Of a DNA stretch of 64,000 bases, positions 5,583 to 35,009 are shown piece after piece. How positions within the stretch are numbered: position 1 is the stretch's first letter; every line of letters begins with the position of its first letter. The position numbers were made by a program, and so were the translations under genes. Source of the stretch: Oopsacas minuta (Eukaryota; Animalia; Porifera); NCBI GenBank assembly GCA_024704765.1, contig JAKMXF010000310.1, positions 434,001 through 498,000 of the forward strand, written 5' to 3'. The notes beneath the pieces were generated by a model. It made no database searches, was not told the DNA's origin, and worked only from the letters and a program-made list of their open reading frames with translations.

Positions 5583-6381
5583 CAGTGGCGTTTCTAGACT
5601 TTTTGTTAGGGGGGGTGCAAATTTATATGGATTGACATTGAATTAATTATCCTATACTTTTATAATAACCATCAAGTGGTCAATCAGTGGGATTGATATA
5701 CTACGCCGGTAATAAGTAGATGGAGTGTCAGCAGGAATATTATTGCGGTGAAATGACGTCACAAATTCGAGGTAAAGATGGTACTGTACAAACACTTTTG
5801 CACATCTCCACAGTAAGAAACCACCTCCTGTGATATGAATCAATATTTCTCTAACTTCTTGCAAAGCTAACTTCACGTTGTTTATTCTGATACAGCTTCA
5901 ACGATGTCTTTAGTTTCTGCTTGTAGACTGGAGGTCAAAGTTTCTATGTATTTAAAGCTGTAATTTGTTAACACTAATGCACAAATAAAATCTGTACTAC
6001 ATATTGCTATTTGTAGAGTCCTTACATCAGTAATTGCATCTGATGTCCACAGGGTAGGACCATCACTACAAACATTATCGAAACAGGTTACTACGGAAGC
6101 CTAGAGAGACTGAAAAATTACTAGTGTATTAATACATTGTACCCATCCATCGGCATTGTTTGTGAAATTTAAGACAAAGAATATTTATGTATAATAATAA
6201 ATATTAGTCAGACTATAAATGGATTCTTCTCCATCACTGAAGTAAATTTGATATTTGATTGTTGAATTAATTTTGACTAACATGAAACCGCCAGCGGAGC
6301 TAAATCACAATAAATTACCATCATTGAAATTTAAGGGGAGTGCTGGAACACCCGCTGCGCCCCCCCCTGGATACGCCACTG
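5583..6381 (-). mobile_element. Internally deleted hAT element with a transposase fragment (THAP12/PRKRIR-like)
   Basis: TIRs CAGTGGCGT (5583) and ACGCCACTG (6381). Minus-strand fragments TSSLQAETKDIVEAV and HRNNIPADTPSTYYRRSISIPLIDHL at about 5650-6100. No clean 8-bp TSD. Confidence 0.75.
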
Positions 6382-9300
6382 CTCCCATATAAAACACATA
6401 TAGGTTCAGTTCATAAAGTCCACAACCAAATATTACACGACATAACAACAACAAAACAACATTATACTGAGGTAATTGAGTATGCTGAGTCCAAATATGA
6501 TCTTGCAAACAACATATCATTAATATTTGTTCAATTTTGGGAACATAAAGTTAGCAGATTTAATGATTATGACAGTATCATGTTTGCTACGGTTAATATT
6601 ATGAGTTTATGTACTCGAGGGCCGAAGGCCCGAGTGCGGACACGAAGTATTCGCAACCGCGTAGAGCAAACGAATCGCTAGTTTAGTTAAATTTTCATCC
6701 ATATGTGACAATAATAGCTTTGTATCGATGGCAATGGAAGTGAAAATGTCAGTCAAATTTTGATTAATTAATACGTAATGTATTAATATATATATTTCCC
6801 ACTATATCAATTCTTTGATCGTCACTGATATAAATACTTAACTTTGTAACTAATTACAAATACATAATCGAAATAATCTTAAATCCTACGGGAGAAGAGG
6901 TGACCGCAGATGTGGTGGGTCTGGACGAGGAGGCTATGCATTTCTGCATGAAATGCTCAAAACTTACGAAAACATTATAATGGTAAGTATACATAATTAC
7001 AATTTATATAAATCAACCGTTCGCCCTTTATTTCAATTTGGTGCGAAAATGGGAGCTGCCAGAGGACACAAAGCAGGCGGCAACAACGACACCACCACCA
7101 CTTTCAGATCGGGACCCATCTAATAGTAGCCTCTTAAACCTGACTAGGGAAAGCAGCCATGAACCACAATATTTTTTCTCTATTCGCAATCGAGAAGCTC
7201 GTACAGTCGCTATTAACAATGATATAGATTTAGCTACAGCACTGAGCGAATTATCTGGGAAAGATACTTAGCTCACAGATGTCATTATCCACGCATTCAT
7301 TGTATAATCTATTTTTGTTTATGAATGAATGAATTTATTTGCCAATTTTCAATAGCTATCTTACATAATCATTTCCCTAGAATTCAGGGATTGAAAATAT
7401 AATCGAAAGGTTGCAACTTTATCCGAATAGCATCATACAAATTCACTATGACAAGAGAAAATATACTGGGTAAAAAATCAAGCATATTTAGGCTGACAAT
7501 ATATTGATTGTATAAGTTGCTTAGTGGTTTGTATTCATTTTTATTGCCTATGAAACTGAAAATAGATAGGCTTGGGATAAACACATTACATTCGATTCTA
7601 ACAACTAATTTCATGATCATCATATTATAATTTTGTTATACAATAGCTACCCCTCGGACACGAAGTGTTCACAAGCCGCGGAACGCAAGCATGCGAAGTT
7701 TGTATGTGTTTCTGAATGAAATGAGAATGTTCACAAGTCGATTCTACAATTTTGGTGACAAGGTTATATTTAGTTTCTTTCTTCTCTATGACTTAATGGT
7801 TGATTCCTAACCACACGGGGGTTAGTACAGTTCTAAAGAGAGAAATCAATCTGAATCTAAGTGGGACTTAATTTCTGTTTTAATGAAATCACAAGAAGTT
7901 TGGATTTATTAAATGTATAGATTTGGGATATTTCTTGTTCCTCGCATTTTCTATGGTGTAAATGAGTGTCGTCTGTATTTGGCGTTCTTCAACTATTATT
8001 AGTTTAGAAGATTGTTTGAAAAATTAAGAAGAAATTCTACTTGATTGAGATCGAAATGGCCCCAGAATTGGGAGGTGAATTTTAAAGCAGTTCTGTTTAG
8101 ATGAGATAAAGGAAGAAGTTCTGTAGGGCTTGGAGTGAAGATGAATCAAACAAATCAGTAAATATCAAGTTCGTAGTTGTTTGTATTGCTTATCCGTTTG
8201 TTCAAATTCGTATATTTTGTTAAAGTATTTACAATTTGTGTGTTGGTATTAGTATTTCGAAAAATGAGTACTCAGTTGGAGATTAGAAATTCATATTGAA
8301 AGAATTCAGAATTGTCTTTCCTAGTTATTGGTAATCTATCTTCTTGCCCAGAAAATGGAAATGAACAAATAAACGAACTCTCCCATTTGTATTCTGAAAA
8401 AGCTGGTGCTTCAGTTGGGGTGAAAAGAATCATAATTAGCTAGAACAGACGCTTCGCTATCTTGCGCCGCGCTGTGAGGCTTATGAAAACCTAGAGTCTA
8501 CTCAGGCAAAAGCAGCAGCTCTTGTATAGCAATCAAATTTAGCCAGATCCTACAATCTGACTTTGTTGTTAGAGTCGAATGGATAGATGTAAGGTTTGGT
8601 AAATGTATTTTTCCATAAGCCAATCAATCTACAGTGTGATATAGTAGCTATTGCAAATCTAAACACTGGAAATTTAATCCATAAAATCTAACATTACCAT
8701 ATGTGCAGAATTAAATTTCACAAAATTAACTTCAGTGTTTATTGAACTATATAATTCCTACTAAATTTCTATTTAATAGTTTTAGAACATTTCCAAAGGT
8801 TGTATAACCTTTGGAAAATGGGTCTACCGTATTAATATATAACTAACAAAGGAATTATAGGAAATCCATAAATTTCCAGTTAATTCGGTTAGCCGGGTAA
8901 TCGGTTAACCGCCGTTACTTCCAGCTAACTGCTAAGCAGTGGATAGTGCAGGGGGAGCGGCCCCCACTACGAATTCAAGGGGGAGAGGCGCTCCCTCACT
9001 TTAACTTGATCATTGTTATTTTATTATAATAAAGGTAGATTAAGTTTTCCGGAGTTGCCCTTCTTTCGTACTCTAGTCAACTCCTCTTAATGGGGTAACA
9101 TCGGCACCAGGCGATTTCCAACCAATTAAGCGGATTGAACTTGTTGGCCCGTTTCAGGAATTATTTAACATCGCACTGCACTATTTTGGCCAAGTGATCC
9201 TATCAACCGTGTCGCAATTTTGCATATTCTGGACCATTATAACAACAGTGCAATTGAGGTTTGCCATACTGTCTCTCAATAATTAATGGCCTCCTACACC

Positions 9301-10095
9301 TACAGCCATGTGAAATTCCATAAAAGATTATTTCATTATTCTTCAACTTACTCAGGGATGTGGCAAAGAGTAGTAAAAGGACCAATAATTCAATACTGAG
9401 GCTTTGAGACGATTTTTAATATAGAATAGTTAGGCAAGAATGGATTGCGAAGTCGACTGTTTTATAATGTACTGAATGCATTTTTGTTTACTTTCTCTTT
9501 GTCTAACATCATGATTCTGTTTTTGGCGTGTAGAACTTTGAAAGATAAAACATCTGCACCGAAGAAGGACAACATTATTTGGAAGTATTTTTAGTTGATA
9601 TTACTCGTAATGTGGATTACAATATGTTTCCTTGATAGAAAATATCTTTGTTTTACCAATTTTTTGCTTAATATATTCTTTTATAAGCTCTCCTCCACTA
9701 GAAATTTGAGCACTACACCCCTGGTGCTAACGGCTACTAGCAATGTGAGTGAGCTACCCAAAGCTCCACTTTCTACTAAATCATTGTCAAAACAAGGATA
9801 TGTTAAAGTTAGCAATTGCCTAGACTGTTAGTTTGTATTAAATTACAAGCTCAAAATACCTTCTATTTTTTAGCGAATTCGGCGACATCCACATAGTGCA
9901 TTAAATACGTCATATCTCCACCCAATAGACATGATAAGGCAGTTTCCAAATGATGAAATTATTTTTAGGGAGTTCAGCGGGATGAGAAGCTGTCAAGAGT
10001 TGTTTTATTACAGGAAAGAGATTTTTTGTCGAATAATCTGCTTTTATTGCTCTTTGTTAGTATACTGATAGTATGGAATCTGTATACCTTGGTTG

Positions 10096-11309: not shown

Positions 11310-14300
11310 TCAAATATTGTAGTCAATGAAAATCTTGACAATAGCTTCATTAACCATTTCCTTGCCCACCTTTTGGAATTGACCACACAGTTTTCCTAGA
11401 TTTCCTTTCATTGTCTCTTCAAACTCTGGAAATGTCGTTCCCGTACTTATCCCATAATATTGAATATCAGCATTGTGCATTTTATCCCAGACATCTATAT
11501 TCCAATCGAATTTACATAAAGTACCATGATTGCAACAACAACAATTTTCTTTACTACTTGCAGAGGTATGCATTTTAAAATTTGGTAAACCTCCATGTGG
11601 AGGAGCATCATAGATGTGAATGACAATGTTTCGAACATCTAATTTACGTTCCCAAGTATAGGAATTAATTGCGGTTGCCAACCCATCAAGAACAGCTTCT
11701 GGCCCATCTCCTCCACCAAAAACCTTTACTCTATTCAGAAAATCGGTTATAGTGTGATGATGCTTCGTGAAATTGCGATCATTCGGAAATACTTGAATTA
11801 TATCCTTAGCATCACAGTGATCACGATAGATAACTATAGCAAACCTTGCTGGATTACCACGTTTTTCATAATGGCTAATTAGCTGTCCAACAGAGACTCT
11901 CGCCTTATCGATATCTGTAGTCATGGACCCAGTCCCATCTATCACGAAACAGATATCATACCCAACTTTTTTATGCCTGATTTCCCCAAACGATGTGTAA
12001 GGTGTATATGCGATATCAGTACCTTTACTGGCGTGGTAATCAAGTATTCCTCTCCCAAATTTATTCCAAATTTTTATCATATTGTTGCGGTTCTCTTCTA
12101 GCAATTTTTCGTAATCTTTATCTTTTGGTAGTGTCCAATCCCATTCGTTGCCGGTTTTTTCCTTAAATTTTCCCCATGTCATTTCGTATCCAGGTAGTTT
12201 AACCTTGGTATCATCAATATAATCGTCGCATATGGATAAAACTGCAGTTCTATCTTTGTCGTTTTCCCATACCTTACCACCCATAGAGCTAATTTGATGA
12301 CCTGTTTTTATAAGACATTTTCCATTGTGTGAATGGAGTTCCCTCTCACAAAGTTTACCACAACTAGGACATTGAGATGGACAGTTGATCACAAGCGTTT
12401 CATATTCATCTTTTATGTGTTTAACTGTTTCTTCAAATTCAGATCTAGTAATTTCATACTCATAACATTTTAGAACGGACAAGAATTCTTTGACGTATTC
12501 GTAGATATTAAATATATTCTCTGAATTGAATATCTTTGTATTGAGTAATCTTTTGTAGGAATATTGATCAAGCTTAAGCGTTGGTTTTTCAAAAATCAGG
12601 TTCGATTTGCTGCACTTTACCTTTATCCCCTCTACCTTAAAGGTTCCTTTAAAATGCTTTTTCATGTCATTTGAGGACACTTTGGGATCAAGATACATCT
12701 TGAAGTATAATAATGTAGCGTTTTGTAGACTTTCTTTATGTTTGGTATTATCGGCTTTTAGCTTTTGCATGAATTGATTAGGGACGACCTCAAAAAGGAG
12801 ATCTGAATCGAAATTTGTTAATGGTAATGGTATTTCTTCTTTTTCTACCATGGATAAAGTATCTAGAAGATTCTGTTGTAAAGTTGAAAGAATAATTTGT
12901 ATCTTCTCGTTCTGTACAGAGAATTCTTCTTTCATAATCCTGACGCATTCAACGTAGAGTTTTTCTACAAACTCAGCCCACTGAGCTTGAAAAGTATCTT
13001 TAATTAAATCTTGACGATTGCAAATGGACTGAATTATGATATTATTTTTATCAAATACTTCTTTTCCTGGACTTTTGTTTAGTTCTTGTTGTATTAAATC
13101 ATTAATGATTAAGGATATATTCTGATAGGACACTTCCTTTATTCGTTCTCTAAACTTCTTTTCAACTAAATATTGCTTGTCAGTTGCGATACCACGCTTC
13201 AGCCCTTCTAAGAAATCTGATGCATACTGATTGGAAATCTTTTTATCATTTTCTCTCCTCTTGGGTCGATTCAAATTTCCTCTGACCATTATTCGATTTT
13301 CAACTTTCTGCAAAAAGTATGCAAGCATTTTCGATTTCTTATTTTCTGTTTGTTCACTAGGCTTTAATCTTCGTTTATTTTTTGTCTCCCTTAAGCATTT
13401 GAATACAAAAGCGAATACTAGTGTCGTTATTGTCCTTTCAGCTGTGTTAGTTAATTTAGCTTGTATATGCATGATTTCATAGTTTACCCATTTGAATATA
13501 GAACACAAGTAATCAATAATTTGCTTAACTGAAGCCTGAGAAACTGTCGGATCCTTCTCAAGCAATTTCTCAACCTCAAATAGTATATTTTCGATTAACT
13601 TTAACCATGTGCTTTTCTCAGGATTACATGGATCCTTTAAGATGGAAGCAAGCAATCGTATTTGAATTCGTTTTTCCTTCTTCCCCCAGACTATATCTGC
13701 ATGATTAAAATAACCAGAGCAACATTTGACAAGAGGATGACAGTGATCTGGTATCCATTTACTGATTGTAGGTTTTACTGGTTCAATATAACCACTTTTA
13801 TCTGCACGCTTATCAACTATAAACAAAGATTCCTTACTTAGATATTGATAATGATTTTCTCCTTTGTAAAAAGTCATTTGTTTTATCGGCACATTGTTCT
13901 CTCTCCATGGAAATATGAAATCACTTGTTTCAGCAAAAGTGTCCGGAACGTATTCAAATCCTCTCTTGATCCTTCCCCTAAGAGACTCTATGATCAAATT
14001 CATATCGAATTTTAATTCCTCAAATTCGTCAAAAATATTTTTCTTATTTTCGAGGGCATTAGACGCCAATTTGAAAATCATATATAGGTTCTCAAAGTCT
14101 TCAATATGCTCTTTTTCTTCGTCTTTCTTGCCATCATCTTGGAAGCATTGCATCCAAAGGCCCTCGAAAGCTTCCTTTTGGTGCTCAATGCTGAAATCTA
14201 GATATTTGTCTAGGTTTTTGTTTATCTCATTCTGGAAATTTTCCATGTTTTTAGATACTTTGATTTCAACTAATACAGCCTTTATGTGGAACTTCAATCT

Positions 14301-17300
14301 GTCCTCGTACTCTTTCTTCTCAATATACAATAGCCTCTTTAGATTACTCCGCATTTCGTCATAAATGTATGTCATATTTCTTAGCAATATCTCAGTGTTA
14401 CATTCTTTATCGAATAAAGTCAAGCATTTTTCCTGATCAGTTTGAAAGACATCATTAAATTTCTCTATATATTTGGTCGACATTGTAGTGTAATCTTCTA
14501 GTAGATCAGTATTTTTGATTTTATCAACCAAATTATCTAAGGCAGAGGAAAAGTCTTTCTTCTTGCAATAGATATGCTTTTGCATTACTTCCTCAATTAT
14601 TCCTGTGAGAATTCTATTACAGATTAATTCATCAAAGTTACTATATCTGACAATATCTTGATAGTTAATTATGGTGTCCCAGATCACTCCAGACATTTCC
14701 ATCCAGTCGCTCATTGTTTCAAAAGGTGCTCTGTCTCCTTGAGGCATATCAGTCAGTTCATTGATAACAGCCGTTCGTAATTGTGCACACTTACTTGCAA
14801 ATATAGGTGTGGGAGAGAGTTTGATAAGTTCTGAATTAAAAAGATTTGCAGATGGCGTGTTCAGTTGGATCGAATTAAAGGCAGCTGGGAGGACAAATAA
14901 ATTTTTCCTAGTTACTTCTATGAGATCTGATATCTTTACCCCTTCGAGATCCATAAAATCAGATTCTTGTTTGAGTTTATCCAATAAAATGTTAATCGAT
15001 TCAACATGTTTACTAGTATCTAGAACAGCTTGCTGATTGAGTACAAAGAATATTTTAGGAACTGATACTTTGCTTACTCTAAGCTTGTGTAGAGAATATG
15101 CGCATATATGAAGGAGGTTCTGCATCTCGTCACCTAATTCGCCTTTCACATTGATTATCACAACCTGAGATACAGCCAAACAGAACAACACCATTGTCCT
15201 GTCAAAGTGAATCAAAGAAGTCTCTTTTAAGCCCCCCTTCTTCACAGCATCTAGCCCTTCTGTATCGAGGATCAAGAATTGATTTGTGAGGTTAAATGGT
15301 TTGGTGAGTTTACAGAGAGATCCATAAATTCCTCTCGTACATCTTCCAGCGCTAGTTAAGAATTTACAACCAAAGCAATAATTCAATAATGTTGATTTTC
15401 CGGAACTTTGTGGCCCAAATATGCTTAATACAATCGGTGCTTGTTTCATCTTCATTGTTTTGCCTTCATTGATTCTAGACAGCTCATCAAACTGATTCTT
15501 ATATAATATCGATAATAATGCATTGATATCTTGATTGAAGAATCTTAGATTGTCACCGTCAATCAACTCAAATGCCTCTCCATTTTCCACATAATTGCTA
15601 AAGTTTGTGGCGAATCTTTTTTTGTATTTTTCACGTTCTTTACATTTTGTTTTCTCTCCGTACTTACTTGACAGCAATGCTTCTCTCCACAGAATTTCCA
15701 GAGTGTATCTATCATTACAATTGCCAGTCGTCTTAGTTTGCATTATTTCGTGTTTTTGAAATATTGCCTTATTAGTGAGAGCAGATAGTTCTTGGGATAA
15801 TTTCCAAAGGATAAGACCAGAATGGCTTTTCTCCAATATGTCGTTGAAGCGAAGAACTATTTCACCCATTTTAGCATTTCCTAATTGCTGACTGAGCTTC
15901 TCACGTTGTTCCTCCAACGTACAGATAATTTCCCTTCTGGTCTCGATTGATTCTTTATAATAACAACTCATGTAATCAACGAACTGAGGATAGTACTTTA
16001 AGAATGATAGATCAATTTCCCCGTTAGGTTTAGTATTCACTTTGACAAAGTTTGTAATACTATTGATTAATTTTTTATCCGATTGAATCTCCTTCAGATC
16101 TGGGCAAGATAGGCGTTTCATTACAGATTCCATGAATTCAATTCCGATTAGATTAGCATTCTTACACTTCAAGTGAAGAATTTCATATCCGATTTCTTTC
16201 AGAGATGTTTTGATATTCAATTCTGAGTTTGTTAGTTTAGGAATAAGGATATATTTCATTTTTTCATCTAATTTCTGAGTCACTACATTTGTTACATCGC
16301 TATCTCGAACAAACACGTAAATGTGTTCCATATAAGGTTTAAATAGTGCAATTTCTTCCCTAAGCTGAGTGGTATCCGATATATAATCAAAGTTACTAAT
16401 ATGAATTAATGCAATTTCCAAATTTTTGCAGAGAGATTGAATAACACGTATATCAGAATTTCCATGACAGTCAATATAAGCCCATTTTGTCGCCTCACCT
16501 TCGTCTAGCTCTCCAAATAGATTCTTAGTCATTTGTATATCAATAGAGTTGGGATGGAATGGACTATTTCGCTCACTTCCTTTAACAAAATCTGTCTCAA
16601 AAATAAAATCCAATAAATGAGACTTCCCTATAGGATTCCACCCTGCCCGCCCTAAACCGAAAGATATTATACCGTTGAATTGTTGCATGGAATACCACAA
16701 CTCACTGCAAAATTTGAAATTAATTTTGTCTTGAGGGCTAGAGTAGGAAAGGAGAGCTGGGTAGTACAGAGGGACAGGATTACTGAATGAATAATGTTCA
16801 ATGCAGAAACCCCTCAATACTGGATCAGATGTTTGAAATATAATGTGAAATAATTCATGTGTATTGAGGGTGACATTGCTTGCTTTGTGAATTATTGGAG
16901 TAATATCCTCAAATGATAGACTACATTTAAGGTAATAGAAAATCAGGGGTAAAAGTTTATTGAGCACTTCACTTGGGTTATTTCCCACTTCTTGTGCTGT
17001 TTTTGTCATACCATCAATTGAGTCTGAAATTATCATTCTATAAGAATCAAATTTCTTCATATCTGTACCGAACATAGCTACTAATTGTCCAATTTGTTTC
17101 TTCTGCAAATCTACATAATGGTCTTTCTCAACTTGCTTTGGTGCATAATCTTGCAAATACTCGTTGATTAAAGATTCAACCCGGTGTAATTCAGTGCTGA
17201 GCTGTTCTATATTGCTATTGCTTTCCTTGATTTTGGAGATTTCAAGCATTGTTAATTCTTTATTAATATTACAGAAATCCCTTGACTCTGAGAACTTGTT

Positions 17301-18014
17301 AAAATATTGATTAAGTTTTGAGTAGTCACGGTTATTGGTTTTAGGTAAAATATAACATAATTGATCTTGTAATTTCAAATCCCGTTTTATAACTCTCTGG
17401 CGGAAATTTTTTTCTTCAATGGGTCCAATGCGGTCCTCTATTATCTTTCGCGCTATTATACCCTCTTCACTACTGAAATTTAGATATGTGACTTCAATGT
17501 ACGACTTAATCTTATGATTGGATATTTCCAAGTTATTACTAATATAATTGATATTGAAACCACTGATGAATAATTGGTCAATCTCTGATTCTTGCCTTTT
17601 GCTAATGGGTTTATTATCCAAATAGTCCCCGATTAAATGCACTTCTTTGATGTTACAATATAATGCTATTTGCTTTGCTGTATCAAATTGACCAGGGTGA
17701 TCTTTCAAACATTTTTCAATCCGGTTTTTCTCTTCCTTAGTTAAAGTCCTATCTCTGCCAGTGTCTGCCTGTGTGAATGATTTTAAGATTTCCAGCGCCT
17801 CGATAGCGGTTTCGATTTGAATTTTTAGTGATAATCCCAAGACCTTGGGTTCAGAGAAAAACTCTTCTCCTCTCTCTATCATAAAGTCAACTTGATCAGT
17901 ATTAAGTCCTAATTTAGTTAACTTAACGCGTAGCGGACTTTCAACTGAATCTGGTGATTGTGTTAATAACTGTTCCTGTTCCTTTCCTCTTTTAGGATTG
18001 AGATTTTTCTTCAT
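11310..18014 (-). CDS. Very large GTPase (GVIN1/URGCP, VLIG family) with HTH-like N-terminal repeats and a C-terminal vWA domain; 2234 aa, single exon
   Basis: G1 GPQSSGKST, G2 RCTRGIY, G3 DTEG, G4-region RNQ/NQQ-type LNQQ, and FDRTMVLFCLAVSQVVIINVKG typical of VLIG. Cys/His module CPSCGKLC..H..C..GH. vWA with DICFVIDGTGSM, YRDH, GGGDGPEA, YDAPPH. Confidence 0.9.
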   Translation of the reverse strand: MKKNLNPKRGKEQEQLLTQSPDSVESPLRVKLTKLGLNTDQVDFMIERGEEFFSEPKVLGLSLKIQIETAIEALEILKSFTQADTGRDRTLTKEEKNRIEKCLKDHPGQFDTAKQIALYCNIKEVHLIGDYLDNKPISKRQESEIDQLFISGFNINYISNNLEISNHKIKSYIEVTYLNFSSEEGIIARKIIEDRIGPIEEKNFRQRVIKRDLKLQDQLCYILPKTNNRDYSKLNQYFNKFSESRDFCNINKELTMLEISKIKESNSNIEQLSTELHRVESLINEYLQDYAPKQVEKDHYVDLQKKQIGQLVAMFGTDMKKFDSYRMIISDSIDGMTKTAQEVGNNPSEVLNKLLPLIFYYLKCSLSFEDITPIIHKASNVTLNTHELFHIIFQTSDPVLRGFCIEHYSFSNPVPLYYPALLSYSSPQDKINFKFCSELWYSMQQFNGIISFGLGRAGWNPIGKSHLLDFIFETDFVKGSERNSPFHPNSIDIQMTKNLFGELDEGEATKWAYIDCHGNSDIRVIQSLCKNLEIALIHISNFDYISDTTQLREEIALFKPYMEHIYVFVRDSDVTNVVTQKLDEKMKYILIPKLTNSELNIKTSLKEIGYEILHLKCKNANLIGIEFMESVMKRLSCPDLKEIQSDKKLINSITNFVKVNTKPNGEIDLSFLKYYPQFVDYMSCYYKESIETRREIICTLEEQREKLSQQLGNAKMGEIVLRFNDILEKSHSGLILWKLSQELSALTNKAIFQKHEIMQTKTTGNCNDRYTLEILWREALLSSKYGEKTKCKEREKYKKRFATNFSNYVENGEAFELIDGDNLRFFNQDINALLSILYKNQFDELSRINEGKTMKMKQAPIVLSIFGPQSSGKSTLLNYCFGCKFLTSAGRCTRGIYGSLCKLTKPFNLTNQFLILDTEGLDAVKKGGLKETSLIHFDRTMVLFCLAVSQVVIINVKGELGDEMQNLLHICAYSLHKLRVSKVSVPKIFFVLNQQAVLDTSKHVESINILLDKLKQESDFMDLEGVKISDLIEVTRKNLFVLPAAFNSIQLNTPSANLFNSELIKLSPTPIFASKCAQLRTAVINELTDMPQGDRAPFETMSDWMEMSGVIWDTIINYQDIVRYSNFDELICNRILTGIIEEVMQKHIYCKKKDFSSALDNLVDKIKNTDLLEDYTTMSTKYIEKFNDVFQTDQEKCLTLFDKECNTEILLRNMTYIYDEMRSNLKRLLYIEKKEYEDRLKFHIKAVLVEIKVSKNMENFQNEINKNLDKYLDFSIEHQKEAFEGLWMQCFQDDGKKDEEKEHIEDFENLYMIFKLASNALENKKNIFDEFEELKFDMNLIIESLRGRIKRGFEYVPDTFAETSDFIFPWRENNVPIKQMTFYKGENHYQYLSKESLFIVDKRADKSGYIEPVKPTISKWIPDHCHPLVKCCSGYFNHADIVWGKKEKRIQIRLLASILKDPCNPEKSTWLKLIENILFEVEKLLEKDPTVSQASVKQIIDYLCSIFKWVNYEIMHIQAKLTNTAERTITTLVFAFVFKCLRETKNKRRLKPSEQTENKKSKMLAYFLQKVENRIMVRGNLNRPKRRENDKKISNQYASDFLEGLKRGIATDKQYLVEKKFRERIKEVSYQNISLIINDLIQQELNKSPGKEVFDKNNIIIQSICNRQDLIKDTFQAQWAEFVEKLYVECVRIMKEEFSVQNEKIQIILSTLQQNLLDTLSMVEKEEIPLPLTNFDSDLLFEVVPNQFMQKLKADNTKHKESLQNATLLYFKMYLDPKVSSNDMKKHFKGTFKVEGIKVKCSKSNLIFEKPTLKLDQYSYKRLLNTKIFNSENIFNIYEYVKEFLSVLKCYEYEITRSEFEETVKHIKDEYETLVINCPSQCPSCGKLCERELHSHNGKCLIKTGHQISSMGGKVWENDKDRTAVLSICDDYIDDTKVKLPGYEMTWGKFKEKTGNEWDWTLPKDKDYEKLLEENRNNMIKIWNKFGRGILDYHASKGTDIAYTPYTSFGEIRHKKVGYDICFVIDGTGSMTTDIDKARVSVGQLISHYEKRGNPARFAIVIYRDHCDAKDIIQVFPNDRNFTKHHHTITDFLNRVKVFGGGDGPEAVLDGLATAINSYTWERKLDVRNIVIHIYDAPPHGGLPNFKMHTSASSKENCCCCNHGTLCKFDWNIDVWDKMHNADIQYYGISTGTTFPEFEETMKGNLGKLCGQFQKVGKEMVNEAIVKIFIDYNI

Positions 18015-18095
18015 GATTAAATCTATAAATGAGATATAATTGTACGATCCGGGCAGTACCGTCTGGAGAATGTACGTATATTAGAATATACCCGG

Positions 18096-20926
18096 TGTAA
18101 CAGCCTAGATTAGCCTCCCCACCCAGTTTAACCCCGGGTATAGTCTGGGCTAGCCTAGATTAACCCCCAGGTATAAACTGGGCTAGGCCAGATTAAGCCC
18201 CGGGGTTAATATAGGCTAGCCCAGAGTATACCCTTTAGCCCAGATTAACCCCAGGTATAGTCTGGGCTAGCCCAGATTCTACCCCTGAGTTAATAGTCAA
18301 CAAATTATGATGTTATCTGCTTGTAGAATACAAGTGATGTGTGTGGCGGTGACACTTACAATGTCTATATTAGTGTTTCAACTATTATAAATATACTAGA
18401 AGAGCATATGTACTTATTTGATCTATCAATTATATTTACTGCATTGTTTTGATGGATGATCAACTCTACAATCAAATATTGCATTTTTTTATATCCAACG
18501 AAAACAAATATCCAGGAGAGATCTATAAACTTCCAGCTGAAAAACGAGTCAATGCGAAATCACAATTCAGACAAACTGTTAAGCCATATACTTTGAAGGA
18601 TGGGGTTCTGATGCATGCTGAAAAGCAAGTGTTACGAAAAAGTGGAGTGGACGCAGTACTTAAAATGTGTCATGATAACCCTGTAACCGGTGGTCATTTT
18701 GGTCGTGACAAAACCTACCAAAAGATCGCATCAAGATTCTACTGGAAAGGTAAATATTTACTAATACTTAATTTAACATTCAATCCGGGAGCAAACTTTC
18801 GCACTCAATGGGTAACTCAATGCCACTGTTGGCATATTAAAGCTTAAGTAAATTCCTTAATTAGGCGATGAAACTTACCTACAATCAATTGTTAGACCGT
18901 TGTTAATACATTTGGGTTTATTTTTTCAATTGATGTTGTCAAATTCCCAAGATTTGGAATTGTAAACAAATTTCACAAAGTTTCATGATTCCCAAATGTA
19001 TTCTTTAGGTATGAAGCAAGAAATTGAAATATATTGTAAACAATGCATCAAGTGTTTTGAAGTCAACCCAAAACTTAAGATGGACCGTCCTCCACTGTCT
19101 TCGATACGCGTACCATCTCAAGTATGGAGTCTTGTAGGAATTGATCTCATCGGGCCCTTACAGGAGTCTACAAGTGGCAACAAATATATTGTAGCTATTT
19201 CAGACCACTTTTCCAAGTGGTCAGAAGCTAGTGCCATTCCTGACAAAACTTCTAAATCTGTAGCTGATTTTCTATACCTAGTAGTTTGCAGATTGGGATG
19301 TATGGACACACTTATAAGTGATCAGGGAAGAGAGTTTGTGAACGAAGTTATTGATTATCTCCTTGACATTCTGCAGACTGAGCATCGAATTTCTTCTGCT
19401 TATCATCCTGAAACAAATGGACAACGGGAGAGAGATAACCGTACCCTGAAATCTGCATTGGTGAAATTGGTAAATGAAAGAGGTGATGATTGGGATATGT
19501 ATATCCCAGGAATACTATTTGCTTATCACACAAGCATTCATGCTTCTACGAAATGTACTCCATTTCAAGCGATGTATTGTCGTAGTGCGAAGCTACCAAT
19601 TGATTTATCCATTAAACCTCCAAAATCAATTGAGCAGGCGAATCCAAAAGTTTTACAGGCGTTTGGCATGATGCGTGAAGCTATCAACGCCAAAATTGAT
19701 CTTAATATCACAAACGCGCAGAAACACCAAAAACGCAACTTTGATAACCGTCATTCTAATAGTAAAGTGTTATCACCTGGCGCAACTGTGTACATAAAAA
19801 ACAGCAAGCAAATACATCGAATGGGATCGAAAATGGAACCACGCTGGATAGGTCCTTACAAAATCATTGAGTTGCTAGATAAAGGACGTGCAATCCTAGG
19901 GAATATTAACACAGGTAAGAAACTAAAAAATATATATAATATTGCAAATTTTAAGGTTTATGATACAAATAACAAAGATGAAGATGGTAAATCAATGAAA
20001 AAGAAAACAATTTCAATATCACATTCCAAGATTAAGAAACTAGAGTGTAAGGATGAGCTAGTTTTAATTGGAGTTAAACAAGGAGTCAAACAATTCAACC
20101 CAAACAGACTGTTTTCTCCAATTTCCGCTGATTCTAGAAAAAATGTTGCCAAAGTTCTCAACTTGAACATATGCAAGACCCAATACTTTGGAAAACCTGG
20201 CTTCCTATCTAAACCCGCGCGGATATACAGAACTAAAGGTGATGGTAATTGCTATTTCCGATCAATAAGCTACATCCTAACAGGTTCAGAAGATAGCCAT
20301 ATTATAATTCGTAATAAAGTCGTCCATCACATGAGTGGTAGTTTGAGTGAAACACTAAGAAAGTATCTTTCTCAAACGGTTGCCAATTATGTCAGCGAAA
20401 GTGCCATTGACTCCAGTGGTGTTTGGGCAACCGAGGCAGAAATACTGGCCACAGCTAATCTTATTCAACATGATATCGTTGTGTATGCAAAGAGTGGGGA
20501 TTCAATGGAATGGCTTACATACCCTGCATCTTTTACATTGACAGAAACAACAGAAACTGCATTGTATCTGGAAAATTTAGCTGAACACTTCAACGTAGTC
20601 ATTAATATACAATGATACTAGAAACATAGACAATATTTTCCTATCTGTTCATTAGTACCATAGATTCATTATTGTATTAGCAGATGATTTAAAAGAACTA
20701 TTAATCACTATAATCTCATTGGAAATATTTACACAGGGTATAAACTAGGCTAGGCTAGTTTATACCCAGGGGGTTAATTTGGGCTAGGCTAGTTTATACC
20801 CAGGGGTTAATCTAGGCTAGGCTAGTTTATACCCTGGGGGTTAATCTAGGCTCAGAAGGTATAATCTGGGCTAGCCCAGATTATACCCGGGTATATTCTG
20901 GCGGGAGGTTAATCTAGGCTGCTACA
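18096..20926 (+). mobile_element. Complete Ginger1-type DNA transposon (Gypsy-like integrase), 2831 bp
   Basis: Starts TGT (18096), ends ACA (20926), CCGG on both flanks (18092-95, 20927-30). TIR TGTAACAGCCTAGATTAGCCTCCC versus TGTAGCAGCCTAGATTAACCTCCC. About 190 bp of tandem subterminal repeats at each end. No RT, RNase H or gag. Confidence 0.92.
18452..20615 (+). CDS. Ginger transposase: H2C2 zinc finger + DDE integrase + GPY/F motif + OTU cysteine protease. Exons 18452-18749 and 19009-20615 (634 aa)
   Basis: GT(18750)..AG(19008) intron restores FYWK-G-MKQEIEIYCKQCIKC. Catalytic GIDLIGP, SDQG and E exactly 35 residues later (NGQRE). RWIGPY. OTU motifs GDGNCYFRS, WAT and HFNV. Confidence 0.9.
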
Positions 20927-21257
20927 CCGGATCTTAGAGATAAATCTATCTCTTTATTGTGGTTAACGTACATCCAAAACACAATTTCGACGATTTACAC
21001 CTGTTTGACATGAAACTACAGCTAGGCAAATTCTACTTGTATTGTATTATGGGGAAATTGTATAAATATTGGAAACATTTTGAACTGACACAAAACAGCA
21101 CCAGCAGCCACTATTAGTCATATTATCCCGCTCTCACGTCAAACCCTGAAATCTCACACTTTTGACTTATCTCTTTGGAAAAAATATTTACTCAAGGCAA
21201 TTTTATAGTCTTGCAATGCATTGGAAACTGTTTGTTCAAATTCAACACAAATCATTA

Positions 21258-28375: not shown

Positions 28376-30271
28376 ATGGCTACACTATCAGACGTATTGA
28401 AAGAAATATCTGTAGATACTCCAGCTGATAAGAAGAATAAAGAGAGAATAACAGCTGCTACAGAAGAGAGGGAGAAGAGCAAAAGAGTTAAGCTAAGTGA
28501 ATGTACGTTCTCTCGTGTAGTAGTGTACCAGGATCAAGCAGAAGTGAGAAGAGACTTGTCTTGCTGTCTGGCTGAGGGAGAGAACACAGTAACGATTGTG
28601 GGGTTCCCTGAAGTGATAGACCCTGATTCTGTCCGTGTTGAGCTGAAGGGAGGGAAGCAGAAGACAGATGTGACAGAGGGTGTGGTACAGATTACTGATG
28701 TAGTATACAATTCTCAGTATCGTGTGGAGTTTGAAGAAGAAATGACTGAGACAGGAGGAGGAGAGATTGATAAGGTGAGCTTGTCAGTATCAATGTCAGA
28801 AAGTGATCAGCTGAAGCGTGAGAAGGTAATGATAGAGAGGAAGATAAGTGTGTTGAAGAGACTGCTGAATTTGCTGAGTAAAATGAATGCAGTGCTGCTG
28901 GATGAAAAGGTACGATCATCTGAGGAAGCAATGACTCGAGTGAAGCAAGCCAGTACTAGAGATCATCTGTCGTGTGTTGTAGAGTTTGTGGAGTACAGCT
29001 GTTCACGACGAGATGAGTTGGATAAGAGAGTGAGCTCATTGAGAGAGCAGCTGAATAGTGTAGTTACGAAGCTAGAGACAATTGCACTGAATGAAGCGAG
29101 GAGTGGTGGTCGTGTGGGAGAGGGTGATAGGGAGAAGGGAGTAGGACATGAATACGTACGAGCTGTAGAAATAGTGTTTGAATCAGATCGTGAGAGGAGT
29201 GTTGAGGTGTTAGTGAGTTATATGGTGACTAATGCCAGCTGGAGTTCTCTTTACCATCTACGTGTGTCTACTGAGGATAGTAGTGTACAGGTACAATACT
29301 TCGGACAGGTGAAGCAGTGGACAGGAGAGGACTGGTCCAATACATACCTATCTCTATCTACTGCTACTCCCAGCAAAGGTGGTAATCCTCCAGAACTGCA
29401 GCCACATCATATTTCACGTTACTATCCACAAACTATGCAATATTACTCGGGGAAACAGAAACGTTTTTCTTCATTGTTAAATGCTTATGATCCTACGATA
29501 GAAGATGAAAGCTTAGCCGAATTACAAATGCTGTCAGGTGGACAGGAACGTTTCAGAACTATTACTTCTGCAATGCCTCGACCGATGCAAGCTGTAGAAG
29601 TAAGTACAAGTCAGGTCCAGACAGGAATGTTCATTCAGACATTCAATGTACAAAGACCAGCTAGCATTCCTTCTGACAGTACAGAGCATAAAGTGTCTGT
29701 AACTGTAATAAATCTGGAATCTACTTTCGAGAATGTATGTTTACCAGAAATGAACACAAACGTGTATTTGCTAGCAAAGGCTACCAACACGAGTGAGTAT
29801 CCTCTGATTAGTGGTCCTACTTCTGTATTCATGGACAATAACTTTATCTGTAAGTCTAAGCTGGATAGTGTGTCACCTGGCGAGGAGATCAGCTGTTCTC
29901 TGGGAATAGACCCGCTTGTGAGAGTGAGCTACAAGACTGGAGACAGTTTCCAGTCTCATCAGTCGGGTTGGATATCAAAGGGAACACTTAGTGAAGAGTA
30001 TAACAAGGTGACGAGTGTTAAGAACACGAAGAAGAAACCAGTCTCTGTCAAGATTGTAGAGAGTGTACCTGTTAGTCAGGATGACCGTGTCAAGGTGCAT
30101 CTGATAGAACCTGTGTGTGATAAAGTGGGAGTGAAGGTGGGTGTGTCAGGAGGGAGTGTGATAATGAATGAGAAGAATCATCTAGAGTGGCACATGCAGG
30201 TTGAACCCACTAGTCAGCGTAAATTCCTACTCAGTTATGTAGTAGAGTATCCTGTTCCTAAGTATTATTAG
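28376..30271 (+). CDS. DUF4140/DUF4139 protein (F37C4.5 / MuiA-like), 631 aa
   Basis: N-terminal VVVYQDQAEVRR..G.P..IDPDSVRV, a coiled coil, YMVTNASWSSLYHLR, WTGEDWSN..LSLSTATP, SIPSDSTEHKV, GEEISCSLGID. Confidence 0.88.
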   Translation: MATLSDVLKEISVDTPADKKNKERITAATEEREKSKRVKLSECTFSRVVVYQDQAEVRRDLSCCLAEGENTVTIVGFPEVIDPDSVRVELKGGKQKTDVTEGVVQITDVVYNSQYRVEFEEEMTETGGGEIDKVSLSVSMSESDQLKREKVMIERKISVLKRLLNLLSKMNAVLLDEKVRSSEEAMTRVKQASTRDHLSCVVEFVEYSCSRRDELDKRVSSLREQLNSVVTKLETIALNEARSGGRVGEGDREKGVGHEYVRAVEIVFESDRERSVEVLVSYMVTNASWSSLYHLRVSTEDSSVQVQYFGQVKQWTGEDWSNTYLSLSTATPSKGGNPPELQPHHISRYYPQTMQYYSGKQKRFSSLLNAYDPTIEDESLAELQMLSGGQERFRTITSAMPRPMQAVEVSTSQVQTGMFIQTFNVQRPASIPSDSTEHKVSVTVINLESTFENVCLPEMNTNVYLLAKATNTSEYPLISGPTSVFMDNNFICKSKLDSVSPGEEISCSLGIDPLVRVSYKTGDSFQSHQSGWISKGTLSEEYNKVTSVKNTKKKPVSVKIVESVPVSQDDRVKVHLIEPVCDKVGVKVGVSGGSVIMNEKNHLEWHMQVEPTSQRKFLLSYVVEYPVPKYY

Positions 30272-30656
30272 TTATATATTTTCGATAATTCACAGTTCCG
30301 GGTTTATACCATTTCTTAGCTTGGTTCTCAAGACGTTTTCAACTGTGTGTATGTGATTACTCTCAACTGATTTATTTATTCTGCCATTCTATCTTGATTT
30401 ATTATATTTTATCTTCTCTATCTAGTAGGCGTAGGTATATTTACCTTTTTGGTTCTCGAATTGTTTTGGGTTATTTTGCATTTTTGAGCAATCTCCTGAG
30501 ACTGCAGACGTATCGATAATTCCTTGTCATTATTACATCTATACAATATTATAGGTGTTTGATGTATACTACATTCACATATGTGGACACGTAACGTATA
30601 CCGAATTGTCCATACACAAATACGTATATATACTTTATATATTATTCTAGTTGTAA

Positions 30657-32126
30657 ATGAAACTCTACCAATTAGCACTAATTACAGTTATTTCACATTT
30701 TGGAATTGTTTCATTCGCTAATAGCAGTTGTATAGGTGATGATACGGGATTTTGTGAATTAGGCCTATCTGTCTTTCAACCATGGTGTTGGGGTTATGAA
30801 GCTAACTGTTCATTTGATGAACAGCTGTTCAATAGACCATTATGTGAAGGGTCACCAAAGCCATGGGTGAACACGATGGAGGAAAAAATAGAAAAGTTCT
30901 GGAGACAGGCTGACTTCGGTTATATTCAAGATTTCCTTTCCACAATAAGCGACTTCTGTGTGCCCAGAAAATCCCATCAAGGTCATCTCAAGTGCAGTAC
31001 TAACATGCGATACTGTCACTCAAGGAATCTCGTATTAGACTTCAAAGAATACAACTTTGATACCAGAGATAGGTTCCTAGAAGATATAGCAGAGCGTGTT
31101 GTTATAGGAGGGGATTGTATTGTGGAATCAGATAAGATAGATATGAATGGCCAGCAAGGGGGAGCTCTACAGTCATGGCATAGAGAACTTAGAAAGTTCA
31201 AGACTATGTCAATGGGACATAATTGTGACGTCACTATAGAACGTCCTGTTGTCTTTATGAAGCTAGACGCTGGTGTCAACATGTATCATCATTTCTGCGA
31301 CTTTGTTAATCTCTACGCATCTCAGCATCTAAACCGTTCCTTCTCTAGAGATGTAGAATTAATACGTTGGGACACTGGTACATTATATTATCAAGATTTA
31401 TTCAAATCTGTCTGGAAAGTATTCACAAGTCATGCAATCAGGTCTTTGTCAGAGTTTTCTGGTAAGATTGTGTGTTTTAAAGAAGCTATGTTCTCTCTAC
31501 CGCCCCGTATGTACTACGGTCTATTCTATAACATGCCGCTAGTACCTCAATGCTATGGTAGTGGTCTCATGAAGGCATTCTCTAGACATACCCTCTCACG
31601 TCTAAACATCAAACATAGACCATTAGACAAACAGGTACAAGTTACGCTGGTACCTAGAAATACTAAATTCAGGAACATACTGAACCAGGAGGAATTGATT
31701 TCTGCACTAAACACTGTAGGAGCTATCAACTTAACTGTAATAGAATATAATCCTAGGCATATGTCATTCATACAACAGTTAGACCAGACGTATAACAGTG
31801 ATGTGTTTATTACCATGCATGGAGCAGGACTCACACACCTGCTGTTCCTACCTGACTGGGGCTCAGTTATTGAACTATACAATTGTGATGATGCTGCCTG
31901 TTATCGTGACCTAGCTGCTATCAGAGGAGTTAAGTACTTTACATGGGAGGAATCAGAAGCTTTGTTTCCACAAGATGAGGGACATCATCCTAGCCTAGGT
32001 GCTCACAAGAAGTTTACCAATTATTCCTTTAAGCTCGAAGCGTTTCTAAAGTTAGTGCTAAAGGCAGTAGACTACATCATACAGCATAAACCTACAGTAT
32101 CTCATCACATTCATACTGAGTTGTGA
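30657..32126 (+). CDS. EOGT: EGF-domain-specific O-GlcNAc transferase (GT61)
   Basis: Signal peptide; CWGYE, FWRQADFGY, KLDAGVNMYHHFCDFVNLYASQH, MHGAGLTHLLFLPDW; C-terminal HTEL ER-retention signal. Confidence 0.95.
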   Translation: MKLYQLALITVISHFGIVSFANSSCIGDDTGFCELGLSVFQPWCWGYEANCSFDEQLFNRPLCEGSPKPWVNTMEEKIEKFWRQADFGYIQDFLSTISDFCVPRKSHQGHLKCSTNMRYCHSRNLVLDFKEYNFDTRDRFLEDIAERVVIGGDCIVESDKIDMNGQQGGALQSWHRELRKFKTMSMGHNCDVTIERPVVFMKLDAGVNMYHHFCDFVNLYASQHLNRSFSRDVELIRWDTGTLYYQDLFKSVWKVFTSHAIRSLSEFSGKIVCFKEAMFSLPPRMYYGLFYNMPLVPQCYGSGLMKAFSRHTLSRLNIKHRPLDKQVQVTLVPRNTKFRNILNQEELISALNTVGAINLTVIEYNPRHMSFIQQLDQTYNSDVFITMHGAGLTHLLFLPDWGSVIELYNCDDAACYRDLAAIRGVKYFTWEESEALFPQDEGHHPSLGAHKKFTNYSFKLEAFLKLVLKAVDYIIQHKPTVSHHIHTEL

Positions 32127-32572
32127 GTTTAGTTCTTTTGCATTTAAATTTGTTATTTTTATTTCAGAGGCTTTAGTTCACTACTAATTAGCATTTATGA
32201 GTTTTTACATTTATCATAGTCATACTATCATTATACAGTAAATGCTGGTTAGAATAACAATTGGGAGTAGCAGCAAATTATTATATATAAACCCACAATA
32301 CTCGATGCAACTGCAGGCTTGGGGCTGATTATGATCGCTCGTGTACTCATTAGTAATCAACCCAAGGTATGCATGTAAAAAGACCACATAAACGGTACAC
32401 TAATGTTGCATGCAAATTCTAACAAATATAATTACATGGAAATTTAACATACACGATGCACAGTTGCAAAGTGTATATTGAGCTTTAGTTGTTGTTATAT
32501 ATAACCAGTATTCATTAGATTGCATCTCTTGATATCTAAACTGATACAAGTACTTGCCTTGATATTATAAGT

Positions 32573-33418
32573 ATGTCCACCCAATCTATCTTTCTCTCTG
32601 ATACCCCACAGATCATAAGACCAGGTACAGGTGGGAGTGTGAGGAACTTCTTATCACAAGTTGAGTTGAGGATCCTTACTATTCCTCACCCTCACCCTCA
32701 CCTATATATAACCCCAGATACAATCTGTACTCAAATAGAGAGTACACGGACTATCAGCATTACTATTGGGAGACATGAGTCAGAGATACCATACTGTTTG
32801 TATGATGTTATACTAAATATGCGAGCAGGTGAGGTATTACTGTTACCTCTGTCATTCAGTGGTAAGTTGGGGTGTAAACACCTGGAAACTAGGTCACTCA
32901 CTCACTCACATACAGCTGTACAGATAGTTTCTTTTAAACGTTATGAAAGTTTACATACATTGTCTGCTGGTGAATTACTTGACGAAGCAGAGAGACAGAA
33001 ATTATCTGGTAATGATTTATTCAAGATGGAGTCACGAGGTTATGCAACATATCATTACTCAATGGCTGTTAAGCTATGTATTTTAGCTAATAGTCATGAA
33101 GATTCTGCAATACTATTAAAGAAAATATGTATTTCAAATCTATCTGCTTGTTGGTTACATTTTGGTAATTTTGAAAGAACAGTTGAAACTACTCAGAAGG
33201 TTTTAGAAATAGAACCAACTAATGAGAAAGCTCTCTACCGACAGGCTGTAGCATTAAAACAGTTAAATGAATTTGATAGAGCTTTGGTTAATATTAAGAA
33301 AATACTATCATTCAATTCTAATAATAGGGAAGCTATTCAAGAAATGACTTTAATTCGTAACAGACAGAAGGAATGTTTGAAGAAAGAACGTGAAAAGTAC
33401 TCTAAACTATTTTCATGA
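32573..33418 (+). CDS. Degenerate FKBP domain + TPR protein (FKBPL/FKBP6/AIP-like), 281 aa
   Basis: FKBP-like IPYCLYDVILNMRAGEV; TPRs KLSGNDLFK, SNLSACWLH, EPTNEKALYRQAVA. Confidence 0.75.
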   Translation: MSTQSIFLSDTPQIIRPGTGGSVRNFLSQVELRILTIPHPHPHLYITPDTICTQIESTRTISITIGRHESEIPYCLYDVILNMRAGEVLLLPLSFSGKLGCKHLETRSLTHSHTAVQIVSFKRYESLHTLSAGELLDEAERQKLSGNDLFKMESRGYATYHYSMAVKLCILANSHEDSAILLKKICISNLSACWLHFGNFERTVETTQKVLEIEPTNEKALYRQAVALKQLNEFDRALVNIKKILSFNSNNREAIQEMTLIRNRQKECLKKEREKYSKLFS

Positions 33419-33604
33419 TAATTTCACGATTGTTAATATTTTGGACTTGTCATTAGCTATTAATAAATTTAAAAGAGTACTGTCAACTCAGGTTACTGGA
33501 GCCCCAACCCTGTGATATTCTGTTCGATTAACCTTATTCAATTAAGTTGTAAAATGTAAATAGCATACAACTTTACATACATAAGTTATTTCACATTAGA
33601 CATA

Positions 33605-34939: not shown

Positions 34940-35009
34940 TTCTTTATTTTAGCTGTAATTACTGGTATTTAGAAGTAAATCTGTACATTAACAATTAGCT
35001 TAATTAACC

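Follow-up and report, generated by a model that had tools for sequence, protein, structure and literature searches.

Contig JAKMXF010000310.1 (C310) of the glass sponge Oopsacas minuta carries, within a stretch of 64,000 nucleotides (positions 434,001 to 498,000, hereafter the window), a giant intronless gene for a GTPase of the dynamin-like VLIG/GVIN/URGCP family. The gene lies on the minus strand at positions 11310 to 18014 of the window. It begins with an ATG, comprises 2234 codons, and has no competing long frame in the list of open reading frames (ORFs). The window as a whole contains few ORFs and no tRNAs and has a GC content of 35%. An earlier note, made from the letters alone, had already singled out one 6.7-kb ORF at this place, omitting its strand, and had assigned it to an early-branching animal, as the glass sponge indeed is. 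From end to end, the protein is composed of an array of helix-turn-helix (HTH) folds, a first P-loop domain, a linker, the GTPase domain, a stalk, a zinc module, and a domain of the von Willebrand factor A type (vWA) with a metal-ion-dependent adhesion site (MIDAS). The features of the gene are given below in window coordinates, with the corresponding amino acids (aa) and the evidence used.

11310..18014, minus strand: complete ORF in a single exon; 2234 aa and a stop codon, soluble protein of about 260 kDa
17763..17936, minus strand: conserved four-helix N-terminal module, aa 27-84 (AlphaFold2, predicted local distance difference test (pLDDT) >90; ambiguous fold matches only, Z 5.5-6.3)
17610..17744, minus strand: HTH-fold unit A, aa 91-135, with helices at 93-105, 113-120 and 125-134 (AlphaFold2, VIA-align)
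17481..17609, minus strand: HTH-fold unit B, aa 136-178, with helices at 139-150, 155-162 and 166-176 (AlphaFold2, VIA-align)
17145..17255, minus strand: HTH-fold unit C, aa 254-290, with helices at 256-264, 269-276 and 280-288 (AlphaFold2, sub-threshold Pfam)
16095..16967, minus strand: first P-loop domain (LG1-like), aa 350-640, putative equivalent of the URGCP N-domain (alignment with the PF25496-bearing region of ordinary paralogues)
14565..15653, minus strand: URGCP/VLIG-type large GTPase domain (LG2), aa 788-1150 (Pfam, BLAST, motif conservation)
12405..14564, minus strand: long helical region (stalk), aa 1151-1870 (same order as in ordinary VLIG-like paralogues, hhalign)
12228..12383, minus strand: Cys/His module, presumed zinc site, aa 1878-1929 (invariant Cys/His residues; aligned in an ordinary paralogue)
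11313..11969, minus strand: vWA domain, aa 2016-2234 (Pfam VWA_4, AlphaFold2, Foldseek, VIA-align, motif conservation)

The gene model was known beforehand, but only under a generic name. The identical 2234-aa protein is present in NCBI/UniRef, and a paralogue on contig C49 is KAI6659793.1 residue for residue, which NCBI labels "Interferon-induced very large GTPase 1 [Oopsacas minuta]". The C310 protein retains its full set of catalytic and metal-site residues. Neither a signal peptide nor a membrane segment was found in its 2234 aa, and the vWA domain is therefore intracellular. A candidate membrane segment at aa 940-958 was rejected because the GTPase has one of its conserved core strands there. 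The gene is real, intact and intronless, its product is a cytosolic giant GTPase, and the family identity and architecture of the protein are close to certain.

The Oopsacas minuta assembly (61.46 Mb, 365 contigs) contains three intact full-length copies of such genes, namely the C310 gene, that on C49, and C321:806982-813551. They are accompanied by at least four full-length copies with stops or frameshifts (on C312, C144 and C311, and at C321:770863-777358) and by at least six fragments. The paralogues share about 50% protein identity. A word-based search at full length yielded at least 234 relatives, nearly all from ENA assemblies with contigs of up to 2.5 Mb; among the 120 matches listed, identity is 42-58%, and most are full-length proteins of about 2200 aa. 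The gene family expands, diverges and decays; it has many members, broken copies included, in keeping with the earlier supposition of a fast-evolving family. The combination of HTH units, VLIG GTPase and vWA is common in the family, which answers the earlier question of whether this architecture is already widespread. As to whether it is also characterised, no paper was found on a VLIG/GVIN protein joined to a vWA or an HTH, or on such genes in sponges, and GVIN, VLIG and dynamin are unmentioned in Kaur et al. 2020 and 2021.

The same genome also harbours 12 ordinary URGCP-like loci, most with about 1600 aa, whose PF25683 scores are 314-409 bits; three of these frames are shorter (1045-1183 aa). 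Two ordinary paralogues were scanned against Pfam, and both have PF25496 (152-189 bits) and lack HTH and vWA domains. One ordinary VLIG-like gene is adjoined by a 549-aa ORF upstream of it with a Maelstrom domain, known from the PIWI-interacting RNA pathway (C310:97128-98774, L014:128-1777).

The catalytic domain matches URGCP_GTPase (PF25683) at aa 788-1015 with 89.8 bits (cut-off 55), over profile positions 130-345 of 396, and RHD3_GTPase at aa 866-956 with 50.4 bits (cut-off 42.4). With its roughly 90 bits and partial profile coverage, as against 314-409 bits for the ordinary copies, it is a divergent member of its class. The G1 motif GPQSSGKS (aa 867-874, window 15393-15416), T893 of G2 and the G3 motif DTEG (aa 917-920) are kept in all 64 full-length relatives compared, and the GVIN1/URGCP GTPase with intact G1-G3 that had been recognised from the sequence is thereby established. 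The G4 region is non-canonical (NQQ...D999), likewise in the ordinary paralogues. V997, which is D in 61 of the 64 relatives, was considered as a G4 lesion and rejected, since ordinary paralogues also have V at this position and D999 is retained.

Upstream of this domain lies another P-loop, on which the earlier note was silent. Its Walker A motif, GWNPIGKS (aa 458-465, window 16620-16643, minus strand), contains a GKS that is invariant in the 64 relatives, and the conservation of the surrounding region, aa 350-640, is second only to that of the GTPase and above that of the vWA. Ordinary paralogues have a degenerate P-loop at the place aligned with GWNPIGKS. Between the first P-loop domain and the G1-G3 segment of the catalytic GTPase there is a weak resemblance (hhalign E 2e-4). 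As an LG1-like domain, aa 350-640 may correspond to the region of the ordinary copies that bears PF25496, for which the evidence by itself is modest. A second, upstream P-loop domain in the sponge protein fits the description of human GVIN1, modelled with AlphaFold3, as a protein with two large-GTPase domains.

How much of the protein is inherited from the ordinary type was assessed by an hhalign comparison of the profile of the 64 full-length relatives with that of 11 ordinary paralogues of the Oopsacas minuta genome. Aa 382-2015 align with positions 91-1622 of the ordinary type as one block in the same order (1338 columns, probability 99.85%, E 7e-31), and this shared body leaves out just the N-terminal part up to about aa 345 and the C-terminal aa 2016-2234. 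The plan of a P-loop domain, a helical linker, a catalytic GTPase, a long helical stalk and a Cys/His module is ancestral and common to the ordinary genes; the HTH array and the vWA are the sole add-ons, gained by the sponge-expanded subfamily. In the alignment of relatives, the N-terminus and portions of the stalk are the least conserved parts of the protein, with variable stalk stretches at aa 1151-1200 and 1701-1750. The Cys/His module is built on C1878, C1882, C1885, C1889, H1894, C1900, H1906 and C1929, all invariant or almost so. It had been pointed out beforehand and is present, but it cannot count as new: it lies within the shared block, and BLAST and hhalign both pair it with a counterpart in an ordinary VLIG-like copy, so it is a feature of the family.

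The first of the two additions is the HTH array at the N-terminus. Modelled by AlphaFold2 from 55 sequences, aa 1-345 have a mean pLDDT of 87 and exceed 90 over aa 30-310 except near residues 81-90. The model shows three three-helix units at pLDDT of about 90, each consisting of a long helix, an 8-residue helix, a turn of 3-4 residues and a 10-residue helix, with further helices around the units. Whether these units model as HTHs had been set beforehand as a test of the earlier proposal, and they do. In VIA-align, HTH DNA-binding domains head the list for aa 135-177, with GcrA at Z 7.7 and the Tc3 transposase at Z 7.5. Unit B superposes on the Sin resolvase with a root-mean-square deviation (rmsd) of 1.0 A over 42 residues and on IstA of IS21 with 1.1 A over 41 residues at 22% identity; over Sin, Tn3 resolvase, IstA, GcrA and Tc3 together, the rmsd is 1.0-2.0 A, the length 39-48 residues and Z 6.6-7.7. 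Unit A matches LUX ARRHYTHMO (Z 6.5), units A and B jointly match R2R3 MYB (Z 6.8), and unit C is covered by the bipartite Tc3 match 1u78. Units A and C have the helix pattern of unit B but fewer direct fold matches. Pfam adds two sub-threshold matches, HTH_Tnp_Tc3_1 at aa 260-289 (E 0.01, 16.1 bits, cut-off 21.1) and GerE at aa 141-174 (E 0.046, 13.8 bits, cut-off 23.5), and a search of the ESM Atlas with the N-terminus gave weak HTH-family leads only (score 0.84).

The units had also been described as repeats. Their folds at aa 91-135, 136-178 and 254-290 are indeed alike, but their mutual likeness in sequence is weak (pairwise hhalign E 1e-4, 1.7e-4 and 0.02), which makes them three domains of HTH fold, not recent repeats. 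Units A, B and C are carried by 102-104 of 123 large relatives, and the copy number of unit B ranges from 1 to 7. In the relatives P0039 and P0047, unit B is present in 7 and 4 tandem copies, respectively, and the summed expanded units pass the Pfam thresholds of HTH_23 (49.5 bits, cut-off 24.6) and GerE (45.5 bits, cut-off 23.5), as well as those of HTH_Mga, HTH_17 and Sigma70_r3. The net charge in the Oopsacas minuta protein is 0 for unit A, -1 for B and -4 for C; the means in the 64 relatives are -5.6, +0.3 and -1.3, and the N-terminus has a median pI of 5.5.

P0039 (2626 aa) and P0047 (2468 aa) both come from ENA assemblies, and their 45-residue unit B copies are near-identical. To judge from this, the tandem copies look like a very recent repeat expansion. 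In P0039, the whole N-terminal leader module is repeated as well, near aa 45 and aa 432, and several genes of the P0039/P0047 type occur together on one 312-kb contig.

The second addition is the C-terminal vWA. VWA_4 (PF25106) matches aa 2021-2118 with 41.9 bits (cut-off 27), or 44.1 bits with a C-terminal piece; the generic PF00092 scores slightly under its cut-off, and Med25_VWA gives a weak match (E 0.016). Single-sequence and profile searches of the C-terminal piece against the PDB returned nothing significant. The AlphaFold2 model of aa 1860-2234 (pLDDT 73.5) has an alternating strand-helix core from aa 2018. At E <= 0.001, Foldseek returns 448 matches from the PDB, headed by integrin beta I-like domains (6e-9), and VIA-align places the model among vWA domains with Z 17.7 and an rmsd of 3.0 A over 192 residues; the matches to the vWAs of Rpn10, TFIIH p44, Ku80, Med25, Sec23 and INTS14 have Z 13.5-16.3. 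All five MIDAS residues are present, namely D2026, T2028, S2030, D2103 (in GGGDGPEA; this fourth residue is assigned by motif position alone) and D2136 (in YDAPPHG), and they are kept in 49-61 of the 64 relatives. The metal-ion-dependent site is complete, and metal binding is predicted. A Cys-rich insert follows at aa 2157-2167 (window 11514-11546), of which the CCCC at 2158-2161 is present in 49 of the 64 relatives. Both the MIDAS vWA and its CCCC insert had been seen in the earlier reading. Outside the sponge family, the nearest stand-alone vWA relatives are small proteins of Anaerolineae and other Chloroflexi and one partial protein of the rotifer Rotaria, which aligns over the vWA only. 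They have 34-36% identity and share the GGGDGPEAVLDGL and DAPPHG motifs with the sponge vWA. Among proteins of 600-1900 aa, a word-based search for this vWA gave members of the sponge family only.

The surroundings of the gene are rich in repeats, as the supposed location in a region rich in transposable elements implies. One neighbouring feature lies outside the gene at its 5' side:

18084..20935, plus strand: young transposon copy (Pfam rve and OTU), with an ORF at 18996-20615 encoding an integrase core and an OTU protease

Contigs C199, C188, C323 and C277 bear copies with 97-98% identity to this transposon, whose end lies about 70 bp upstream of the ATG of the GTPase gene. The 3' flank contains older interspersed repeats. 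Those at 5585-6690 and 8945-9725 are 81-92% identical to dozens of loci in the genome and fill part of a 10-kb ORF-poor stretch downstream of the gene. Immediately before the gene (window 18015-18035, minus strand), a ttatag occurs 8 nt before the ATG, and (t/a)tag motifs occur 0-25 nt before the ATG in most VLIG-like paralogues (L002, L003, L014, L021, L024). This motif may be the 3' splice site of an intron in the 5' untranslated region or of trans-splicing. Further along the window, at 28376-36509 on the plus strand, is a run of co-oriented intronless genes for a DUF4140/DUF4139 protein, a GT61 glycosyltransferase, a TPR protein, a SIR2-family protein and an unassigned 499-aa ORF. GC content peaks at 0.425 over this run, compared with roughly 0.35 in the background, and several of its families are mainly bacterial, which makes the run a candidate for horizontal origin.

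Among known systems, the vertebrate GVIN1/VLIG-1 and URGCP proteins have the PF25683 GTPase, the G1-G3 motifs and the giant size in common with the sponge protein. The function of human GVIN1, which coats cytosolic Burkholderia, was assigned only in 2025, and it needs cofactors; its AlphaFold3 model contains two large-GTPase domains with a helical linker between them (bioRxiv 10.1101/2025.03.24.645074). Of the family, only mouse and human members are known to be induced by infection or interferon, to hydrolyse GTP and to form coats on microbes (bioRxiv 10.1101/2025.03.24.645074). In its two P-loop/large-GTPase domains, its helical linker and its C-terminal region, the sponge protein follows the plan of human GVIN1. 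The chordate GVIN clusters of the Atlas, however, list neither an HTH nor a vWA, and the sponge protein has both. Their annotations name GVIN1_C and GVIN1 (PF26772, PF25974), by which the sponge protein and its ordinary paralogues are unmatched, although these models were possibly missing from the Pfam copy used.

Guanylate-binding proteins (GBPs) and the atlastin/RHD3/Sey1 proteins are more distant. The sponge protein passes the RHD3_GTPase threshold, and some relatives score on GBP (PF02263). It differs from GBPs and atlastins in lacking a lipid anchor, a membrane segment and the GBP-type helical domain, in being far larger, and in its extra HTH, LG1, zinc and vWA modules. The vWA resembles the intracellular MIDAS vWAs of Rpn10, TFIIH p44, Ku80, Sec23 and Med25 in fold and in its complete DxTxS...D...D site, and the insert at its top recalls the specificity loop of the integrin beta I-like domain. 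It belongs, however, to the VWA_4 sequence class (GGGDGPEAVLDGL ... DAPPHG), and its CCCC insert is family-specific. Unit B superposes on the HTHs of the resolvase/Tc3/IS21 type (HTH_23, HTH_38, HTH_7, GerE), with 1.0-1.2 A over 39-42 residues for Sin, Tn3 and IstA, but the sponge units are not basic and have no recombinase or transposase catalytic domain attached to them. The nearest cluster by features in the ESM Atlas is a fungal one (Basidiomycota, score 0.88) that also joins a dynamin-like GTPase to a vWA. Its GTPase is of the GBP type, its vWA of the VWA_2 type and its length about 1255 aa; compared by features alone and under the 0.9 line, it is a lead only, and it may be a convergent fusion. 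The sponge protein is not a new kind of system, but the combination itself is real.

The architecture suggests a joint functional model, to which a probability of roughly 0.55 can be given, in which GTP-driven assembly, partner capture by the vWA and recognition by the HTH array would serve cell-autonomous defence. Like human GVIN1 and the GBPs, and likewise the atlastins, the GTP-bound protein would pair through its GTPase domains, and the pairs would build larger assemblies on an intracellular target. The metal site of the vWA would grip an acidic residue of a partner or of the target, as it does in Rpn10, Ku, TFIIH p44 and Sec23. This departs from the adhesion module proposed earlier, which is unlikely in a protein with neither a signal peptide nor a membrane segment; partner binding fits better. 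The variable HTH array would, to judge from its variability and repeat expansion, be the recognition or regulatory end. As the array lacks basic character, bulk nucleic acid would be less likely to be bound by it than a protein or some specific ligand. Cell-autonomous defence would be the most likely role of such an assembly. The family evolves in the manner of defence genes, since it has at least 234 relatives, broken copies, identities of about 50%, 1-7 copies of unit B, and a variable N-terminus and stalk. For the Oopsacas minuta protein itself, a defence role argued by analogy has about even chances.

Several observations weigh against this reading. None of the HTH units of the Oopsacas minuta protein reaches a Pfam threshold, Foldseek found nothing below E 0.1 in the PDB for the whole N-terminal model, and the Z values of 6.5-7.7 are in what the tool calls the middling range, as expected for domains of 42 residues. 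The units are neutral to acidic, unlike typical DNA-binding HTHs, which makes nucleic-acid sensing doubtful. For the first P-loop domain, no Pfam family, PF25496 included, matches aa 346-805 or any of eight LG1 pieces; single-sequence and profile searches of the PDB gave nothing significant; and when cut out alone, the domain aligns with the ordinary N-domain at the expected positions but only at E 0.024. Insertion of the young transposon could have altered the promoter or silenced this copy. Sponges are not known to have an interferon system, and the "interferon-induced" in the NCBI name is therefore a transferred label only.

As an alternative, the protein would be a housekeeping or regulatory scaffold, nuclear or associated with an organelle: its HTH array would be in contact with host chromatin or with a transcription complex, its vWA would dock in a larger machine and its GTPase would act as a timer. 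Nuclear complexes are where HTH domains and vWA domains are both typically met; the vWAs of TFIIH, Med25, Ku80 and INTS14 are among the strong fold matches (Z 14-15), to which the weak Med25_VWA match in Pfam can be added; and human URGCP is linked to proliferation rather than to immunity. Divergent and broken copies, tandem clusters and a varying number of repeats would, however, be unusual for a core factor, and the acidic HTH units disfavour binding to chromatin. Such a scaffold is unlikely.

Less probable still is the idea that the HTH array is a true nucleic-acid sensor, through which foreign DNA or RNA would license assembly of the GTPase, with the vWA as output. Proteins that bind specific DNA sequences lead the fold matches (Tc3, IstA, the Sin and Tn3 resolvases, MYB and GcrA), and tandem arrays of up to 7 copies of unit B could bind a polymer with greater avidity. 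The net charges of about 0 to -5.6 per unit, the acidic median pI and recognition helices that are not basic nevertheless speak against it, as does the lack of any Pfam-level HTH match in the Oopsacas minuta copy; the generic nucleic-acid sensor of the earlier note is weakened accordingly, and nucleic-acid sensing by the array appears doubtful.

A broader variant, to be regarded as improbable to a similar degree, would make the protein an immune receptor of the sensor-switch-adaptor kind, with a dynamin-like GTPase in place of the STAND/NLR ATPase. Here the HTH array would recognise a pathogen ligand, either nucleic acid or protein, and trigger GTP-driven oligomerisation via the two P-loop domains, after which the clustered MIDAS vWAs would recruit a downstream effector. 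If true, an NLR-like logic would have been invented independently in sponges.

That this copy is a silent relic, or the family the cargo of a mobile element, is very improbable: the nearby transposon, the repeats in the 3' flank, the broken paralogues and an HTH fold class that is common to transposases would agree with it, but a 6.7-kb frame remains open in DNA of 35% GC with all catalytic and metal-site residues intact, the protein has no transposase catalytic domain in Pfam, paralogues that are only about 50% identical exclude recent transposition, and the flanking repeats match unrelated loci rather than paralogue loci, with no shared terminal repeats around the paralogues.

These genes are of interest for the GVIN family as a whole, for how it recognises targets and what it signals to. 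The sponge fusions, with HTH units as candidate recognition modules and a vWA as a candidate partner-binding module, offer hypotheses for such inputs and outputs, and they show that diversification of the giant GTPases into a multigene family had begun by the base of the animals.

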